Both the position numbers and the translations under genes were made by a program. A model generated the notes under the pieces. It did not search any database. It was not told where the DNA came from and saw only the letters and a program-made list of their open reading frames with translations. DNA of 64,000 nt from Thalia democratica (Eukaryota): the NCBI GenBank assembly GCA_965202585.1, contig OZ241827.1:22506001-22570000 (forward strand). The letters are read 5' to 3'. Shown here in pieces: positions 13,152 through 38,800 of the stretch (positions are counted from its first letter, which is position 1; the number at the start of each line of letters is the position of its first letter).

Positions 13152-13860
13152 TTAAATTCTTAATGCGTGGGTAATAACCGGTTTAGTTAATTGTTTGTTG
13201 AAAATCAAGTTATAGCGTTTATTTAAAGTTGGTTCACTGATCAACGTCTCAAACTTATTTTTATACTCTTTTAAAATACCAAAACTAGCAGTTATTTTTA
13301 CAGTTTTACAATTAAAAATATGGTCAGTTACAGCTGTCTTTCCTCCTAAGTGTTATTTTACTCTTTTCTATTGGGCTTGTAGTAAATCCAATGTATCGGA
13401 TGATTTTATCCCTAGAGCACTTATACTCGTAGACTACATTAGATTTAAATTCATAAGGTTATTGTTGCTGAAATATTTACTAACTTTGCTTCTAGTAAGA
13501 ATAACTTTAAGGTCTTCAACATAATTTTTTACTAGTTTTTAAAGTTTTTTTTTATGTTATATACTTGGTTTTCCTATATAAGGTACTTCTAGAATGTTTC
13601 TGAAGTTTGAAATTTTTGGATTTCAACTTTTTATGAATTTTTCTCTAAAGTTTGTGATTTATTATTTGTAAACAGTATAACTAGAGGCTATTGTTTTTCA
13701 TCTATCCAAAAAACCATAATATTAACGAGCTTTTACATTAAATTAGTGTCATAGAACTAAAATTCAAAATAACATCCTTATCAATATCTTTTTTGTGTAC
13801 CTTTGTTATTGTTTCGTCTGTTGTTAATTTGGTCTTAATATCCAAGAATGAACAGATAGT
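13152..13860 (-). mobile_element. Penelope-like retroelement relic: RT thumb plus GIY-YIG endonuclease (stops and frameshifts)
   Basis: Minus-strand translation gives FLDIKTKL..TKVHKKDIDKDVILNFSS (thumb), LEVPYIGKPS, SNVVYEYKC..YIGFTT..HLGGKTAVTDH (GIY-YIG) and terminal NKQLTKPVITHALRI*, typical of Penelope elements. Confidence 0.8.
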
Positions 13861-26800: not shown

Positions 26801-28693
26801 GTAGTATAAGTTGTTTTCTAAAACGTTTTAAAACAAGCAAAAAAAGGTAAAAGAAAAAAATGATAATTTAAAGATCTCAATAAAAGTTTCAGTAATATAT
26901 GTAAAACTGGCTAGTTTGTAAAAATTAAATGTATGCGAAAAGACAACGCATTTCGCACGTATTTAAAGTAAGATAATTGAAGATTTTAGATAAATTTTAT
27001 TAATTTTTTTTTAACGTTTTAAACCAGATTTTATTCATTGATTAACCATTCTTATAACAGCCTATGCTAAACTTTAACAGAAAAATTTTTAAACGATTCT
27101 TGCTTTCACACATTGATCAACCATTGAACCTGAGAGTCCGTTCATTGATAAATCATTCCTACAACTATGATTAAGCTTTAACAAAATACATTATTGTCTG
27201 TTGAACGATAAAAGAAAAGCGCTCAAACAGTTTGGTCTAAAGACATGGTGTACGAAGGGAACTTTCGGTTATCGAGTAGTACACCACATGTTTTTACAAT
27301 CTATTACGAGCTGATAAAAAATATATTCTAAAATTTAAAGTCTCAAACTTCTACAAAAATCAAACAACTTTTCTTGCTTTGACCCATAGGTTAAACTGTT
27401 GCATCTATGGGGCAAGCAAAATAAAACTAGTCAAAATACTTAGTTTTTTTTTTCTTTCAGGCATCCGGCGGTCCGGGCCTGGCCTTCATCACGTTCGCCG
27501 AGGCCATCGTCAACCTGCCGTGTCCCAACTTGTGGTCCCTCATGTTCTTCGTCATGCTCGGATGCGTCGGATTGTCGTCGCTAGTGGGCGTCTTCACGGG
27601 CGTGGTGGCCAGTTTCGTCGATCTCGGGGTCAAACTGTCGAAGGCGAGGCTGGCTTTCGTGCTTTGCGTTGGTGAGAAATTTATTTTATTTTTTTGATAA
27701 AATAATATTGTACATTTGTGAAATTTTTTAAAGATAACTTGAAAAAATGCTTTTAACATCAGTAACTTTTGTTTTGAATGTGTGTAATCTGGATACTAAA
27801 ACTTAAGCGTTCTTTTTTCTTTGAATAAATAAGCTTTCCTTTAGTTTTAAAACTCATGACACAAAGTACTGAAACTTGAAAAAAATATAAATCAAACAAA
27901 AATTATATCGCCAAAAAGAACATTCCAATTTTTTTATCTCCAGGTATACTGTTGCTCGCTCTACCGTACACAACTGACTTCGGATACTACCTGATAGACA
28001 TACTGGACAGCAACATTGGCACTTTGACTCTGTGCACCGTCGGACTTCTCGAAGTTGTCTTCACCTCGTACGTGTACGGAATCGACAGGTCTGATTCTAA
28101 ATGTAATTTAACAGACAAATACAGTTGGTTTGCATTTAACTTTCATAATCAGTTGCAACCTTGTTCGAAAGCACTCCTTTTTTTAAATAGTGTCATATTT
28201 TTGTTAGTAATCGACAACTAGAAAAAAAATTTTTTTGTTAGTGTTAATCGTATACTTTTACAATAGAAACACTTGTGTTCGAAACCATTAACCCTAAACC
28301 CGGCAAACCACCGCAAGTGTTAATACAAAACAAAACAGGTTCATGAGAGACGTGACCGAGATGACCGGCATCACGCTGGGCCGCTACTGGAAGTGCACCC
28401 TCAAGTACGCGTGCCCCGCACTGCTGACCACCTTCTTCGTGTCCAACCTGGTCCGCTACGCCACCCACCACCCTCTCACCTACACCGGGTGGGACCGCGC
28501 GAACGGGGCGCAGGTTCCCGTCGCCTACCCGACCTGGGGCTACTTTCAGGTGGTCCTGGTCGCTCTGCTGTGCCTGGCGGCCATCCCAACATGCATGGTG
28601 CTCGTGCGGCTGGGCAGGAAAGAGTTTCTTCGCCGCATAACCGGGGAGAGCAACGAGGGTTGTCCGAGCCAGGAGTTGGAAGCTTTGGCGTAA
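20835..28693 (+). CDS. SLC6 sodium:neurotransmitter symporter family, nutrient amino-acid transporter type (SLC6A15-20-like), 630 aa, 10 exons
   Basis: Exons 20835-21093, 21600-21757, 22111-22318, 22889-23006, 23618-23702, 24473-24714, 26150-26261, 27461-27671, 27944-28088, 28339-28693 (1893 nt, phase-consistent). Motifs WSNKAEYLL..AVGIGNIWRFP..GGGAFLIPY, RGVKSTGK, QIFFSIGIGYG, NSATS, GPGLAF, VYGIDRF; extended EL4 with two Cys (DCF..NCTLEKQLD) as in B0AT-type transporters. Confidence 0.95.
25060..25610. repeat. intronic minisatellite, 4 diverged units of ~135-150 bp
   Basis: TTTAGAATTAAAAACTGTCAGTTTAAAAGA-like unit starts at ~25101, 25234, 25383, 25519 in SLC6 intron 6. Confidence 0.7.
27192..27290 (-). 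repeat. three-hairpin SINE-like repeat, copy 3 (SLC6 intron 7)
   Basis: Reverse complement GGTGTACTACTCGATAACCGAAAGTT..TCGTACACCATGTCTTTAGACCAAAC..TTGAGCGC..CGTTCAA. Confidence 0.72.
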
Positions 28694-29058: not shown

Positions 29059-29136
29059 TTTTGCCGATGTTTTCTTTTGGGGTAATTTATATATATATAT
29101 ATATATATTATACAACAAAAGAAAACATCGGCAAAA
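29059..29136. repeat. perfect 21-bp inverted repeat enclosing a (TA)n microsatellite
   Basis: TTTTGCCGATGTTTTCTTTTG (29059-29079) and its exact reverse complement (29116-29136), 36-nt loop mostly TA repeats. Confidence 0.8.
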
Positions 29137-31087
29137 TATATATACAAAAAGTTTGTAACAAAAACTTGTTTCTGAAAAACTCTTTTAGAAGTAATTTTAA
29201 TCAAATGTGCCTTTTAAACTGGTTAGAAGCCTTATATTTAATTATGTAATAAAAAACAATGTACTATGATATATTTGTTAAATAATGTCGACATGATAAA
29301 ACTCTAGGAATTTAACTAAAACTATTTTGTCGTTTACTTAACAATTATTTCCGAAAAAAATGCATTTTTGAATATTTTGATTCTATATTACGTTTAAAAG
29401 TTTTTCTAAAATGTATAGTTAATCTATGTTTTAAAGCTAAGTTTTATAAAAATACTTTTAGTTTAGCTTGAACTTTTGCTAAAATGCTTTTTTAATTTTG
29501 TATTTACACACATTTAATAGTGTATTTATGTATTAACAATTAAAACAAACTACTGGTTGCAAAAACTTTTTTGAAAGATAGTGAAAAAGTAAGATAGAAT
29601 TAATATACATGATTAATGTACTTGTTGAAAAAGAGACGAGTAAGGACTGCTAATTAGTTGTTTATTTACAATTACTATCATAAAAAAATATTTGTTTTAA
29701 ATTAAATTACCAGTTTTTTTAGGATAGTTATCTCTTTAAAACAAGTTCTATAAGACAAGTTTGTACTTAAAAATATAATCTATAAAAGTTTGAGCCGATA
29801 CGTTCAACCACTCTGCTGTTAAAAAAAAATACTTAAATATATACCTATATAAAATACTAAATTTTCTTAGTTTTGGAAAAAAAATGTTTTTCTCAAACAG
29901 AAGTTTAACATGGTAATTTTAAGCAAATGTTTATACTATTTATTTAGATTTTGTCTTCATTTTTTCTCCACGCATATTTAAAGCAAAAACAGTTAAAAAA
30001 TTTCTTAACGTGAAAAAAATAACTTTTTTTTTTGTTAAAAAGAATTGAACAGGTGTTTTCTCTGTTTTCACGTATGTTTGTTAAGACAAGTAAATTTTAC
30101 TTGTTAAGTTTGATCTAAGTACATTTTTCATTAAAACCTGTACATTTGACCTTAAAATGTTTTTGCTAATTTCTAGGACAAAAAAAAGGAGTTTATGCAA
30201 AAAGAAATAATTTGATTATACTTTAGCCTTATTCAGTTAAAAGCAATTTTGTTTAGTTTTCTATTTTACTTGTGTTGATTACGCTTGAATTAAGTTAATA
30301 GAACAATTAATATGTTTTTATATATATTGTTTGTGTTTTATCTTAGTTTAATGTTTTAATTGTACTATCCTTGACAAAAATTCAAGAAGTATATTGGAAA
30401 AGAAATAATTTGAGTCATATTAATTATTTAGGAAACATAAAAACAAGTCTGATGCTTAAATTGTTAAAAAAGGAATTAATAACTCAAAGGTATTTTGTTT
30501 TAATTTCTGAACGTTAGTTTTAGTAAACTTACGAAAAATGGTTTCTTCTTTCAACAAAGATTTAAGAATGCACCGAAGCCGTTAGCGCCATAACAATGTA
30601 TTTTTTCAACATTAAGTTTATATGAAGTTAAGATTTGCGGCGCATTCTCATACCTTAACTAAAGTAAAAACCACAAACTAAATCTAGTAGCTTAAAAGTA
30701 AAAATGTTCCGAAGCTCAAATAGAGATCAATCAGAAAATGTTGTGCTGCTGAGAGGAAAACAGTAGAATTTTGTTTAGTTGGTAGTGCGTTTTGTTTTGT
30801 TCAACTAGCTTAATATTTCCTATAAGTTGACACAAAAGTTTAATGTTTTACTTTCCATCAGCTTGCTCATAAGTTTATCTTTTCTTAAATGTTAAGTAAA
30901 TTCAAAAGACATTAAAAATTGTAGAATTTTGTAGATATGACATTTATATTATAAAATAAACAAATAAATCACTAACCAACACGTTTGAGTAAAACTATTC
31001 TTGGCTAATTTTTTTGTTTTATTTCTTGTTTTGTATAGTAATTAATGAACTTTACCGCAAGATCAACAACAACAGCATCCGAGACAA

Positions 31088-31127
31088 CCTACGACCGGTT
31101 TCGTCCTAATTAGGACTCTCAGGCAGG
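31088..31127 (-). ncRNA. minimal type I hammerhead ribozyme, variant core CUGA-GA (nucleotide 7 absent)
   Basis: Minus strand reads CCUGC CUGAGA GUCC UAAUUA GGAC GAAA CCGG UC GUAGG: stem I CCUGC/GUAGG, stem II GUCC/GGAC, GAAA, palindromic stem III ACCGGU, GUC cleavage triplet (predicted cut between 31093 and 31092). Confidence 0.8.
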
Positions 31128-32847
31128 CACAGTCGTGTGAAACCGCTGTTGAGATCTAACAAAGTTATACACACTAATAAAGATGCTTCATATTTAAAAT
31201 AATTACAACAACAAATATATGCATATATTAAAACAGTAATTGATACTTTACAACAAAGTTAAAAAAATTAAATGTTCTCAGTTGTTATCACACATTTATT
31301 TGTTATAAATTATGATGTCCAGCTTTTAATGAGAAGCTTATCGCCGCAATGGCAACTATGCTTTACAACCATAAAAACGCTCACATTTTGTTTTTAATGT
31401 TTAATTAAAGTACGAATATTTTCTGCATCTTGAAAATATGTATCGTCGACAAAAAAATATTATGTTTATGTATAGTAAAATAGAAAACCAGTAACTATAA
31501 ATTGACTATATGACGAATTTTCGAACTACTACGTTTTGTTTTTGTTGATTGTATATGTTTTAAAGAAAAATTCAAGTATGAAAATTTACATTGAATAACT
31601 TATCATACAAAACACATTAGTACCCATCAAGTGATTATTTTGTTACAACATTGCTTTTTAAAATTTTAATTTGCATAGAAGAGTTTTTCAAAATAAGCGT
31701 CCCGCAAAAATTTGTTCATCCAGCCCACGAAAATATTATCATAGTAAATCTGGCCCTTTGACTAGAAAAGTAGCCCGTTTTATTTTAGACCAATTAAGTG
31801 CATTTAAACTTCAAAAACTATATGCAATTAGACCCGAAGTAAGCATTAGTATTTAAGTGATGAAACTGTTATTCAAATTTACTTTTTCAAACGTTTAAAA
31901 ATGACTGTTTTTTTAAATTTGATTTAATTAAAATTTGTTCAAAATTCACAGGAACTATAAAATTTATAAATTATTAGTAATGTAGCACAAAGTATATTAT
32001 ACTACAAAAGAAAAACATACTTTAAAAGATTTAATAAGTTCAGTAGTATTCAGTATATAAAATTTTTTTAAGGTGCAAAAAAGGATGATTGTTATTTTTA
32101 CAAAATTTATGATGATCATGTAGCTTTGAACAAAGAGCTAAAATAATTTAAAGTTAGGTGATTGTTAAGAACATAAACAATTAAGTTAAAAAAAAGTTTA
32201 GGATTTGATCGATATGAAATTTTTATAATCAAACGGCTAAAATTTTCAAGTTCAAAAAATATGTTGTATCTTTTAGTTATGTTCAGATGTTTTTAATTTG
32301 GATTTTTTTAAACGCTTATAACCAAAAATAGAAAACACTTTGAAATAAAAAACGGTAGTAGATGTTTCTAAATACAAAAAACTAAAAAGTTTGAGTTAAA
32401 ACTATTTTCTAAACTGAAAAATAAATCAAGCATGTTAAACAAAGTTTAAGTACTAATTTACTTTCCATTTAGTTGGCAGAAAAAGAATAAAAATAAGCTT
32501 TAAAATTAAAAATATCTTATACTATAAAAAAACAATTTTCAATAGTTTAATTACAAAAATGTCATTGGAAAGTTCGATTAATTTGGGTCTGTTTTTTATT
32601 GTTAAGTCGTACAAAAAATTAAAGTACATGATACTTCCATAAAAACGTTGTTCAATTTTTTTTAGAATGTAAGACGACTATCAAAATACTTCCATGGACA
32701 TTTTTAATCGAACTTCATGAAAATTTAGTGCCAAGTGCAAAATTTAAGCTAGTGGGCAGCAGAGAGCATATTGAAAGCGGTACCTACGCTTTATAAAGGA
32801 AGTATTACACACGAGCTAAAAAGATTAACAAACAACAATCATTTAAA

Positions 32848-35800
32848 ATGCCAATAAGCTGGCTTCTGTTCATTTTGTTTTCGCTTGCATATAAGATTGC
32901 GGGTAAAAAAGGTACGTTTGTTTTAAAGTCTAAAGCAATTTAAATCTAAATAGACTAATTTATTTATTTATTTTCTTTATATAAGTTTAACAATAAAACT
33001 TGAATTTTACCTTAAAGATTATTAATTTTGTTGACCGGAATTAGTGGTTTCTTTCTTATAAATAACGAACTTTGTTATGTACAGATTAATGATATAGTCC
33101 CTTTATTAAACTAAAAAATCAAAATCAATTTAAAATTTTTATGTATTGTACATTTTTTGTAATAATGAAAGCTAAGACAGGTTGAAAGATAATTCAACAA
33201 AAATCAACATGTAACTTTCACAGCACTGTCAGTATCCGAGTTGTGTTTGAGCAGACAGGCAGGGTGTGAGGTGTGCATTTCGGCGCACCACCAATGCACG
33301 TGGTGCGCTGCTGAGCTCGGTGAATTTTCTTCCCGCCAAAAACGCTGCAGAACTAAACAGTGAGTAGTCAGCATTTATTTTTGTAATATTTTGAAACGCA
33401 TTTGAAAATTAAGTTTTGAAAGCTTTTACCATAGCAGTTAACAAAAACAACCACATTAAGTCTATTAAAGCTTTTGTAAGAACTTCGTAGAAAATTGCAG
33501 TGTAAAAGTTGTTTAGCTTTTATAACTATGTTTGTTTTAAAACACTACTTTAGATTTTTTTTAATTTTTTCAAACTTTTTTAAATTTTCTATAAAACTAA
33601 TTTCTAGTCAAGTTTTTTATGAAAAAAATATTTTAAACGTTGTTCAGTCTTTACAAATTACTATTTTTACTGTTTTTATATATTATTTTCAAACTCAATA
33701 AGCTAATAAAACTTTTGGCTTTACAGTGAAAACGAAAAACAATGCCAAGCAAATTTAATCTACAACCCGGTAAAGAACTTAACTTACGTAGAAGATAAAG
33801 ATTTCGGTGAAACTACAATCGGAAACTTGAGAAATCCAAGAACGATTGTTCAATTAAAGCCGCAAAATGCTACTTTGAAAATAAGACCAGGTTTTGTTAG
33901 CTACTAAAATATTTGTTTAGATTTTTTATCACTAAGTGTATTTCTGCTTGCATCATTTTATTTTGTAGACCTTATCTGAGGTTAACTAGTCGTCAGTATA
34001 AAAATAAGAGCAGTTTAAAAACTCATATACTTAACATGTAACAAAACAACTAGCAAAAATTTTTCGTAAACACTTTGTTACTTGTAAAAACATAAAATTG
34101 TATTTTTACCACAAGTATTGCCGTAGTGATTTGTTTTATAGCAATATACTTTAATGTAAACCTTTTTAACAACCAATTATATGTAAACTTAAACTATTAC
34201 AAAATTGAAAAGTCGTTAGTAAAGTAACAAAAATTTCAGTACAACTGAAAGTAAAATGCCCAAGTAATAAAGTAAATAAAAAGTTTTTGTCATCAACAAG
34301 TATTTTTAAATTTGTTTTTATTAGCATATTTTAATCCATATTTACTAAGTTATAACATTATATTTTGAACTAATATAAAACAAATACTCTTTAATTATCA
34401 TAATAAATTTAAACTGTTTCAAATGTAATACTTTATGTGACTAAAATTTTAGTTTAGTAAGCATTAAGTTTTCTTCAAAACTGAAACTTTTATTTCACTC
34501 ATTGCATTAAACTATAAGCTTTAGCTCAAACTAACTTAACTATTATTTTGTAAAATTTGCATACTTTGTTCTGTTGTCATTAGTCCTAAAATAAAAAAAC
34601 AGTAAGGAAATAATTATTCTACCTAACATTCATATCAGCAATTTTTATAAGTTCATTTTGTTGAATACTGGAAAAAATACCATGGGTTTTAATAATTGTA
34701 TGGTTGAAATATAGAAAAATTAGTATTTTTAAGAAAAAAAAACAAAAGTTAGATCTTTTATGTGCACGTTTTTAAATTTTTTCTTTTATAAACATTTGAT
34801 TTAAATTTAAACAGGAGAAACTATAAAGTTAAATGTGACTTACAAAAAACTAATGGACTATCCACTAGATTTGTATTATGTTTTGGATTTATCTCTTTCT
34901 ATGGCGGATGATTTAGAAAATCTCAAAGTTTGTTTTTATTTACTATTTTTAAAAGTTTTTATATTGAAAAACTACATTTAAATTTTTTAAGTTTTGTTAC
35001 TTTTAAATTTTATTACTTCATTTGAAGACAGAAAAACAGTACATTTTAGACAAACTTGCACAAAAAAGGCAGACAAAAAACTATCTTTTAAGTACCTTTT
35101 CAAAACTTTTCGTTTAGGGAAGCTTATTAAAGATATACAACGTATAGGCTCCTATCTTATTAAACTACATAGCAAAAAGTTTCTTGAGTTTTAAATTTTT
35201 ATACATATTATAACCATAATTACTATTTGAACTTTAATTTATTTTTTTATAGAATACACTTTTACTTAGAATTTTGCATTTATGTATTCACAACAGCGCT
35301 TTGGAGGAAAACTAGTAAAGGAAATAAAAAATATAACCGATAACGTACACATGGGCTTCGGAACTTTTGTTGACAAAGTCCTACTCCCGATTGCCAGTGA
35401 CGACGAAAAACTGTTAATATGTTTAATTTTTACATAAGTCAGCAACAAACAATATGGTAAAAAAAAACATAAATATGTTCATTGGTTTGTTAACACTAAA
35501 TCAAACGATTGTTAACAAAATCTATTTAATTTTTAGTAATAAATGTAATTTAAGTCAAAGTTTTCAAAATAGCAAAATTGATTTTATCAAATAAAATAAA
35601 ACTTCAAGTTTATAAAATCTTTTTTTTAATAATAGTTTAAACTTTGGACTGATAAACAGTTAAAGTTAGGTTTTAACAACTTCAAACTTTTTTGTCAGGC
35701 AGCAACTGATATGCGCCGACCAAACCTGCCAGCCGACCTTCGGTTTCAAGCATCAGCTGCCCCTCACCAGCGACGGGTCCAAGTTCAAGGAGTCGGTTAA

Positions 35801-38800
35801 TAGGACGGTTATCTCGTCCAACATCGACGAGCCGGAAGGTTCCACGGACGCACTCATGCAAATCGCCGTTTGTCAGGTGACTTTGTTTTTCAAATTATTT
35901 TTAAATATGATTTTTTTCTTAGGCATAGCTAAAGTTATAATTAGTTTTTAAAATTATGCTTACATATTATAGTTCTGATACTTCCAAAACTGCATTATAT
36001 TCCGGTACTTTAGAAATCTAAAAACATTTTAAAAAGTTCTTAAACTAATTTAATCATTCTTTAATTTTCACTTAGTTGAGCTACTTAAATTATTTCGGAA
36101 GAAAAAAATTAATTTCGGCATTATACTGAAAACCTTGTAAGCAAACTCAACAAAACCATAGAAATGGCCAACAATATACCAGCTTAAACATTCTTACAGA
36201 CACAGTTTAAGTAACATTTCAAAACACAGGACATCATAGGATGGAGACCGGAAGCGTTGCACGTCATTCTGTTGACCACTGACGCGGTGCCCCATTTCGC
36301 CATGGACGCTAAAATTGCCAACGTCCATCAGCCGTGCCTGAACAGCTGTCAGTTGAGAAAAGTCGAAACAAAATCGTCGAAGGTAAAAACCCTTTTACTT
36401 AAACAGACTTTTCTATAAAATTATGTTTAATTGTTTTAGTTCACCTAAAGTTTTTCTTTCAAAGCTTTAATTTGTTTTTCCAACTTCTAATGTTAGTCGT
36501 ATTTAAGTTTTTCTTCTTTCGTTACTTATTTTGAAATATCAAGCCTTTGATCGGACTAATATACATAATATTTATTGAACGATAAAAAAGCGCTCAAAAA
36601 GTTTGGTCGAAGGACCTGGTGTACTAAAAAACCTTTCGGTCATCGAGCCTTACACAGCAGTTGACAATTATTAAAACTATGTTTTTCAACTGAAGGGCTC
36701 ATACACAGAGGTGCACTACGAATACGTCAACTCACTGACCCACGACTACCCGTCCCTGGGCCAGTTGGCCTACAACTTCAGGAAGCGCGGAATACAGGCC
36801 ATATTCGCCGTGACAAAAGAAGTTCAGCACCTCTACTCTGTAAATAAACTGTTTTTTTTTTGTAAATTATGTGTATTTTAATTTAAATTTATAAACAAAA
36901 ATTATTAGTAATGTATTTTGTCTGGTAGCTGATAATAGTTATATAAGTTAAGTTCTTTAATGAAAGTATACACAGTCAGCGCTGATTTAATTTTTATAAC
37001 CTTTATTGTTTTCATGTTAGAAGTGCTATATAATATTGTTTAACAACATGGTTGTTTTTTAAAGATAGACATTTTAACGTACAATAAAACTAAAACTACA
37101 CAATTATTTACAAAGTTTTAAAATTAATATGCAGAAGTTTCCGGAACTTTTCAAGAACTCCTATGTCGAAACATTAAGTACAGACTCGAGCAACATCATG
37201 ACAGTTATATCTAGTGCGTACGATGTAAGATGTTTTAATAGTTTTTATAGATTTAAAATTAAATTCTTAACGACCAAAAGTTACTTTAAAAACAGATAAT
37301 GCTCATTTAAATAAAATCAATAGAAAAAAATTATTTCATAAAAATTAAAGTTTGTTTGAAAATTCAGTACACTTTTGAAATTATCAAAGATACTTAATTG
37401 ACTGTTTATGTTACTTTATATTAAACTAAATCTTAGTTTTGAAAAATAAAAAAGTTAACATTTTATTGAATAACTTTTTAAAGGGATGTTTTGTGTGTTG
37501 CATAAAATTATAAAACTAAATAAGTAATTGATTAAAGTTTCATTTAGTCTATTTCCTACAAAAACAGCAAATAAAGAACATATTTACATTTTCTGAGCCA
37601 AGTCACCCAGATAACATCGATGTGTCATACCGAATATTGTGCCCCAACGCTACATCTTGGAAGAAATCACTACGCTGCACTAACGTCGAAATTAATTCGG
37701 AGGTAAGCAAATTTGAAACAGTACTAATCATTGCGACACGTATTAACTTGATCAATTTAGTTTTCGTTTAAAGTTAAAATTTTATTGTATAGTATTTTTC
37801 TTTACAATGTTTAACGCTTACGATGTTTTCGAAGTAGTTCAATTCTTTTTTATAAATAAATCTAAACAAAGGTACAATTTGAATTTGAGTTTAGTTTTAT
37901 AATATAAACATTTCGATTTTATGGTTAGAATATTGAAATACAACTTTCTATCCACAATTAATATGTTAGTTCAAGTAAAAATTTATTTCTAAACGCTTTT
38001 TGTTGTTTTAACTTGCTAGAACGTAAAAAATATCCGATAAACCTTTCGGTAGTATTTTTTGCAATTAAACTCATGACTTGTTACGTTTACTTTGTAACTT
38101 TTAAATTAAATATGTTTACTAACATATATAAGCTGTATAATTGTATAAAACATACTTTTCTTGCATTTAGCTTTCAGCAGACTGTGATTATCAAAATTGA
38201 CATTAATCAAAAAATTCTCATTTTTTCAGGTTGTTTTAGAACTTACAATTAGTGGGAAATGTTCGAAAACAAAAGAAGCACAAGAGATAATTGTGACATC
38301 TCCCACTTTGAGCAGCCAAACCAGAATTAGTTTCGGTTAGTTATTTTCTAAAAGGTGTATTAGCAAAACAAAGCATTTGCAATAGTTGATCAGTGAAGTT
38401 TGGGAAAAGTTGTGTAGTTTAGATCACTTATAGTTTTAAATATCTTAATCAAAGGTTTTTCGAAAGACACAAAATATTTGTTTATAACAGCTTTTAATAA
38501 GTAACAGGCAGATGTTTAAATAAAATTAAAGAAAACGTTTTCTGTCTGCCGCATTTGTTTAAAATTTATTATAGCTTCACTGTAAAAGTAATATTCTAAA
38601 CCAAAACTATGATAAGTTAAGCAGTAATAAAGCTTTAATGAAAGTTATTATCAAATTAAGAGCCTAATTATAGTTCTATACCACAAAAACTTGTTTTTGA
38701 CTGCTTAAAAAAAGTATGTTTCTACTTAAAAAGTACCTCACAGGCTGCAGGGTTTGCTTCGTGGGCCGCATTTGGTTAACAATCTGTAGTTTCTTTTGTT

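Follow-up and report, generated by a model that had tools for sequence, protein, structure and literature searches.

A hammerhead ribozyme sequence lacking core nucleotide 7 in Thalia democratica, a probable decayed remnant of a retrozyme-type retroelement

The stretch of DNA analysed here (the window) comprises 64,000 nucleotides of the Thalia democratica genome (NCBI GenBank assembly GCA_965202585.1, contig OZ241827.1, positions 22,506,001 to 22,570,000 of the forward strand, numbered from 1 below). Between a gene for an SLC6/SNF-type transporter and a gene for integrin beta, and antisense to both, it contains a short repeat fragment with a type I hammerhead motif whose core reads CUGA-GA, so that nucleotide 7 (N7) of the canonical CUGANGA strand is absent (Table 1). 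The motif is a genuine hammerhead self-cleaving ribozyme sequence, mutated by the loss of one core spacer base. Taken together, the data presented here make it highly probable that the locus is what remains, in decayed and non-functional form, of a retroelement of the retrozyme type, which is a known class.

The Rfam model RF00163 aligned the motif end to end, with N7 as the sole gap. The score in this local search was 25.1 bits (E = 3e-4), which falls short of the RF00163 gathering threshold of 34 because N7 is absent; the closest canonical relative in the genome, L033, reached 34.8 bits, about 10 bits above the N7-less copy. At gathering thresholds, Rfam returned no matches in the entire 64-kb window. 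All letters of the conserved type I core other than N7 are present, as are the G10.1-C11.1 pair, C17 and all helices, and no alternative register of the locus sequence restores a canonical CUGANGA. Three helices can be formed, with the ends exiting via helix I: helix I has 5 bp plus outward extensions, helix II has 4 bp, and helix III of the monomer amounts to 1-2 bp, drawn from the ACCGGU palindrome only. Since the hammerhead pattern was found in none of 100 shuffled windows, the motif is not a chance match. The minimum-energy fold of the 98 nt around the motif (−37.3 kcal/mol, z = −3.5) includes the extended helix I, and the self-duplex of the palindrome with its flanks was predicted at −9.7 kcal/mol. 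These results bear out most of an earlier, sequence-only reading of this DNA. Its letters and coordinates for the type I elements on the minus strand, the CUGA-GA core and the predicted scissile bond were all correct, the three outward continuations of stem I that it described are in the minimum-energy fold, and its dimer-type helix III is likewise supported. Its placement of the motif upstream of a plus-strand integrin gene likewise agrees with the Integrin_beta VWA exons at 35.7-37.3 kb. The label "minimal" does not hold under the definition in PMC4209133, by which the architecture is that of a canonical metazoan type I hammerhead.

Table 1. Coordinates of the hammerhead fragment, its structural elements and neighbouring features in the window.
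Feature	Positions	Strand	Basis or remark
Solo 5'-truncated 3'-terminal fragment, ~130 nt, of a ~317-328-nt hammerhead repeat unit	31035..31164	−	Genome DNA search and blastn
Extended helix I rod around the motif (AGAUC/GAUCU, CAACAGC/GCUGUUG, GAC/GUC, CCUGC/GUAGG)	31060..31157	−	Fold and compensatory changes
Type I hammerhead motif, core defective (nucleotide 7 absent)	31088..31127	−	RF00163 alignment
Outer pairing AGAUC/GAUCU	31157-31153 / 31064-31060	−	
Outer pairing CAACAGC/GCUGUUG	31151-31145 / 31076-31070	−	
Outer pairing GAC/GUC	31134-31132 / 31085-31083	−	
Helix I 5' strand CCUGC	31127-31123	−	Sequence reading
Core strand CUGA-GA (C3 U4 G5 A6 - G8 A9)	31117..31122	−	N7 gap between 31119 and 31118
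Helix II GUCC/GGAC, 4 bp	31116-31113 and 31106-31103	−	
Loop 2 UAAUUA, 6 nt	31112-31107	−	Helix II and loop together span 31103..31116
GAAA core strand	31102-31099	−	
Helix III palindrome ACCGGU	31099-31094	−	Pairs only as a 1-2-bp stem or intermolecularly
C17 and predicted scissile bond	31093; bond 31093/31092	−	From hammerhead numbering of the sequence
Helix I 3' strand GUAGG	31092-31088	−	
Terminal exons of sodium:neurotransmitter symporter (SLC6/SNF)	27952-28690	+	PF00209
Integrin beta VWA-domain exons	35670-37296	+	PF00362, E = 1e-19
Near-perfect 78-nt hairpin with (UA)n loop	29059-29136		Sub-threshold miRNA-precursor matches
Two open pieces resembling a decayed GIY-YIG endonuclease	13155-13458	−	VVYEYKC...YIGFT, then a His-containing stretch

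The motif belongs to a larger, repeated unit. When 301 nt spanning the motif were compared with the whole genome at the DNA level, family matches were confined to query positions 97-226, which correspond to 31164-31035, with best identities of 90-94%. In a local blastn comparison, 41 of 115 alignments began at 31164 and most ended within 31035-31044. Upstream of 31164, the other copies have a common sequence that is absent from the window. At the other end, copies inside arrays continue into the head of the next unit, and terminal copies diverge right after ...AUUAAUUAYUA. Because this point of divergence is common to the terminal copies, including the one in the window, 31035 marks the 3' terminus at which the family normally inserts. 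The fragment thus represents about 40% of the unit, with about 60% missing. Neither a second family fragment nor a second hammerhead was found in the 64-kb window, and for lack of the latter the locus has no means of forming a dimeric ribozyme or a circular RNA. A word specific to the N7-less fragment is CCUGCCUGAGAGUCC.

The full family unit is about 317-328 nt long, non-coding, and carries one hammerhead. Units are spaced 327-328 nt apart in direct dimers and about 317 nt apart in the subfamily of the locus. They form tandem dimers, arrays and inverted pairs, many of them head-to-head with a 5'-truncated inverted copy; a sample of 21 distinct insertions from one chromosome comprised 13 solo units, 3 tandem dimers, 4 inverted pairs and 1 insertion that combined an inverted with a tandem arrangement. 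Depth ratios of the contigs hint at roughly 10^4 family copies, but such ratios are not copy numbers and do not enter the counts given here. Metazoan type I hammerheads with a short palindromic helix III cleave inefficiently as monomers and need a second copy nearby; in the canonical form, helix II spans 4 bp, and a 2-4-nt palindrome closes a helix III of 1-2 bp (Cervera & de la Pena 2014, PMC4209133). The present family has this layout (helix II 4 bp, helix III 1-2 bp, palindromic loop), and its copies scored 34.8 bits against RF00163, while their scores against RF02275 reached 38.8 bits.

At least two subfamilies exist that differ in helix I, namely CCUGC/GUAGG, to which the locus with its UAAUUA loop 2 belongs, and ACUGA/UCAGU. 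In an alignment of 44 family copies, helix I and the GAC/GUC extension differ between the two by compensatory double changes. No copy of the 44 departs from the common helix II, and the ACCGGU palindrome is retained in 36-44 of them. The ACUGA/UCAGU subfamily folds an extended helix I of its own with a different sequence, so that the extended helix I is a genuine trait of the family. The tandem array L065 (154-2893) holds at least seven hammerhead units of about 325 nt. One unit near 1500 lacks core A6 and several have ACGGGU as helix III, which indicates that decay also occurs inside arrays. With its 327-328-nt spacing, the L065 arrays, at least 5,520 cores and units free of open reading frames (ORFs), the family fits the published class of non-autonomous retrozymes without long terminal repeats (non-LTR retrozymes) in metazoans.

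Counts over the 802-Mb genome set the N7-less core apart from the rest of this family. The exact N7-less pattern occurs once, at the locus itself. The N7-containing pattern has 2,401 exact occurrences, with U7 nearly always, and allowing up to three mismatches to the commonest 26-mer gives 5,520 sites. When the N7-less 25-mer was searched with mismatches allowed, 98 sites were obtained, nearly all of them shifted matches of substituted canonical cores. The nearest relatives, 90-94% identical, all read CUGAUGA. In four sequencing runs, the alignments of family contigs end exactly at 31118, and the overhang starts with the complement of U7. The remainder of the family carries the canonical core. 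In a handful of copies it is A6 and not N7 that is lost (L063 and L064, which are duplicates of each other, and the L065 unit). These A6-less copies and the lone N7-less copy point to sporadic single-base core deletions, and the N7 deletion was never propagated.

Sites with GUGAGAGUCC in L062, L067 and L068 were considered as additional N7-less copies and rejected, as each belongs to a chimeric repeat joined at the core. Near positions 1450-1560 of each of these loci, the junction ...GUGAGA|GUCC links an unrelated upstream sequence, common to the three, with the 3' half of the hammerhead unit of ACUGA/UCAGU type. This chimeric element is a separate repeat family with half a ribozyme.

Against this background, the remaining claims of the sequence-only reading can be placed. 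Its "solo Penelope LTR or retrozyme unit" stands in so far as the copy is solo and belongs to a hammerhead retroelement of the retrozyme/Penelope-associated kind; a complete LTR it is not, since only the last ~130 nt are present. For the same reason, the ~98-nt folded unit it described is not a complete unit but part of the end of a longer repeat. The tandem arrangement it proposed to look for was found in the form of direct dimers and arrays. It had also left open whether the missing base marked a functional family variant or a dead copy, and had named two observations that would together refute it: CUGANGA in all other copies, and no cleavage of this variant as monomer or dimer. The first is what the counts returned, with one N7-less core against 2,401 exact canonical ones. 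A functional family variant finds no support, the core being unique among about 5,500, and a dead copy is favoured.

Independent sequence data place the deletion at the locus and give it some age. A 603-nt contig from run X1 spans 31090-31692, reaching into unique flank, with 0 differences from the assembly. Run X3 comes from another sample and study under a different organism label and is about 2% diverged; its 904-nt contig spans 31089-31700, an interval in which X3 differs by 13 substitutions and a single deletion of 8 nt, and shows no gap at 31118. X3 contigs also cover 30500-31064 and cross the 3' junction, which is also bridged by a marine-metagenome contig (X5) at about 5% divergence. 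The X1 and X3 contigs, with the deletion and both of the insertion junctions, show that the insertion is old and that no assembly error is involved. Insertion and N7 deletion therefore predate the split of the two labelled organisms; X5 shows the insertion junction only. Over 30500-31700, the marine metagenome and metatranscriptome runs X4, X5 and X9 gave contigs of the single-copy locus at about 5% divergence, from which we conclude that these environmental samples contain DNA of a relative of this animal. Inside the repeat, where conservation of the fragment was to be compared with that of its flanks between two organisms, family contigs swamp the signal of the single locus.

Among RNA runs, matching contigs came from the marine metatranscriptome X9 alone. 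Its contigs cover 31034-31118 only, with a canonical core in the overhang, and its depth on the unique flanks of the locus was zero, so that no locus-specific RNA was seen. The X9 contigs are compatible with family RNA, and carry-over of DNA is possible.

Around the fragment, the terminal exons of the sodium:neurotransmitter symporter gene end about 2.4 kb away. The hairpin at 29059-29136 gave sub-threshold matches to several models of miRNA precursors on both strands, the best being mir-754 with 42.8 bits, where the gathering score is 84; a hairpin formed by a palindromic repeat or a microsatellite is more probable than a miRNA. The sequence-only reading placed a Penelope relic at 13.2-14.2 kb, for which neither Pfam nor tblastn gave support; the two open pieces near 13 kb may be an old Penelope or Naiad relic. 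Pfam gave no match on the open pieces at 12.9-13.9 kb, and tblastn of six Penelope ORFs from this genome gave none in the window.

The genome contains autonomous Penelope-like elements with a reverse transcriptase (RT) and, at the C terminus, a GIY-YIG domain. Penelope-style insertions take the form of partial tandems and inverted 5'-truncated copies (PMC8557442), and the insertion architecture of the present family agrees with these patterns. An origin of animal retrozymes in Penelope pseudo-LTRs (pLTRs) is argued for in a 2026 preprint. Beside some 60 sampled units (3-kb loci), no Penelope-type ORFs of at least 130 aa were found. Conversely, Rfam and regular-expression scans detected no hammerhead within 1.5 kb of 12 GIY-YIG loci, which also showed no similarity to the units. 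At L074:1-1824 (+), no hammerhead was detectable within 1.4 kb downstream.

By analogy with published animal retrozymes, the propagation of intact family members may be pictured as follows. Their tandem units would be transcribed as multimers, in which two neighbouring hammerheads would pair via the palindromic helix III and so release RNAs of unit length. A host ligase would circularise these RNAs, and a Penelope-like reverse transcriptase would copy the circles back into DNA, giving partial tandems and 5'-truncated copies. The copy in the window is one such truncated product, inserted as a 5'-truncated 3' end of about 130 nt between the transporter and integrin beta genes, and it has lost core nucleotide 7, either at insertion or soon after. 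As it stands, the locus is expected to do nothing, being disabled threefold: a partner hammerhead with a second cleavage site is lacking, about 60% of the unit is gone, and so is the spacer between A6 and G8. Even with an active core, there would be no dimerisation in cis and no circle excision at this locus. The N7-less core itself is presumably catalytically dead, judging by the near-universal 7-nt length of the strand and by the "spacer function" described for hammerhead position 7 (PMC4075628).

Several points weigh against reading the locus as a dead remnant of such an element. The retrozyme life cycle of the family is drawn by analogy, and its RNA evidence comes from one marine metatranscriptome (X9) that possibly contains DNA. 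The searchable literature yielded no cleavage data for hammerheads without N7, and natural core variants with insertions or substitutions may keep some activity (PMC3088659). One could argue that the CUGAGA core is still active and cleaves, perhaps through helix III pairing in trans with the abundant canonical family RNAs. N7 is the sole core position without a base identity requirement, everything else in the core and all helices are intact, rare natural core variants do keep activity (PMC3088659), and two organisms that differ by about 2% have both kept the deletion, which would equally be expected if it merely persisted neutrally. Yet a singleton among some 5,500 cores, with no subfamily behind it, was never propagated; the copy is truncated and has neither a partner in cis for a dimeric helix III nor a second site; and the lack of locus-specific RNA in the X9 contigs and the failure of every re-registration to yield CUGANGA point the same way. 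We regard an active core as very improbable. More remote still is the idea that the real locus reads CUGAUGA and that the base was dropped by mistake in sequencing or assembly. Assemblies of repeats do commonly lose single bases in this way, but the site is not a homopolymer, and the difference-free X1 contig and the ungapped X3 contig contradict an error so directly that we give it practically no weight.

A different question is whether the fragment stems from an autonomous Penelope-like element, as its solo pLTR, and not from a non-autonomous retrozyme. The RT and GIY-YIG elements in the genome, the Penelope-style partial tandems with inverted 5'-truncated copies (PMC8557442) and the derivation proposed in the 2026 preprint all lend themselves to this view. 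Against it, no ORF separates the direct repeats, which follow one another at 327-328 nt, and the sampled surroundings held neither a Penelope ORF (about 60 3-kb loci) nor, at the 12 GIY-YIG loci, a hammerhead or unit similarity, both of these being small samples. The hammerhead is moreover of the canonical type and not the min-HHR that is typical of metazoan Penelope pLTRs. An autonomous source thus seems unlikely, if somewhat less so than an active N7-less core, and a decayed piece of a non-autonomous retrozyme remains the explanation that we favour.

In itself, the locus is of little weight, as one mutated and truncated copy among thousands in a known class of animal retroelements. It does exemplify how single-base decay in the core drops a true ribozyme homologue under the Rfam threshold, and it provides a dated marker common to two organisms about 2% apart and to a marine-metagenome relative. 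As a natural N7-less sequence, it is also a ready test object for the spacer requirement at N7. If such a core did cleave, the spacer between A6 and G8 would be dispensable and the definition used in hammerhead searches would widen.

Among known systems, the natural core variants of Perreault et al. 2011 (PMC3088659) resemble the locus in having one core deviation in an otherwise intact motif. They differ in that they recur, covary or proved active, whereas the locus holds a single unpropagated deletion in a truncated copy. Newt satellite 2, Schistosoma Sm-alpha and amniote HH9 (RF00163, RF02275) share the canonical core and a GUCC/GGAC helix II with the family; the locus copy departs from them through its absent N7 and its 25.1 bits, under the RF00163 gathering score. 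The hammerheads of Penelope pLTRs (PMC4209133) have the type I topology and the dependence on a dimeric helix III in common with the family, and those elements likewise insert as partial tandems and inverted truncated copies. Their min-HHR, however, lacks helix III and loop 3, and it combines a helix II of 6 bp with a bulge that follows A9 (PMC4209133), unlike the locus with its 4-bp helix II free of a bulge and its ACCGGU palindrome; the sampled family units had no RT/GIY-YIG ORF next to them.

The closest counterparts are the metazoan non-LTR retrozymes (Cervera & de la Pena 2020, PMC7229834). Animal retrozymes are tandem repeats of 170-400 nt that are expressed as circular RNAs, and the mussel Mytilus galloprovincialis carries about 5,000 type I hammerhead copies in 350-390-bp repeats (PMC7229834). 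Circular RNA is known there, whereas the present family is known from its DNA units and the X9 contigs; the sequence of its unit seems to be confined to this genome and its close relatives, and the locus differs as a solo 130-nt 3' fragment with a broken core. In the remaining respects, the family and these retrozymes are alike: a short non-coding unit with one type I hammerhead, present in thousands of copies and in tandem, a 4-bp helix II, a short palindromic helix III, self-paired rod-like flanks, and Penelope-like elements in the same genome.

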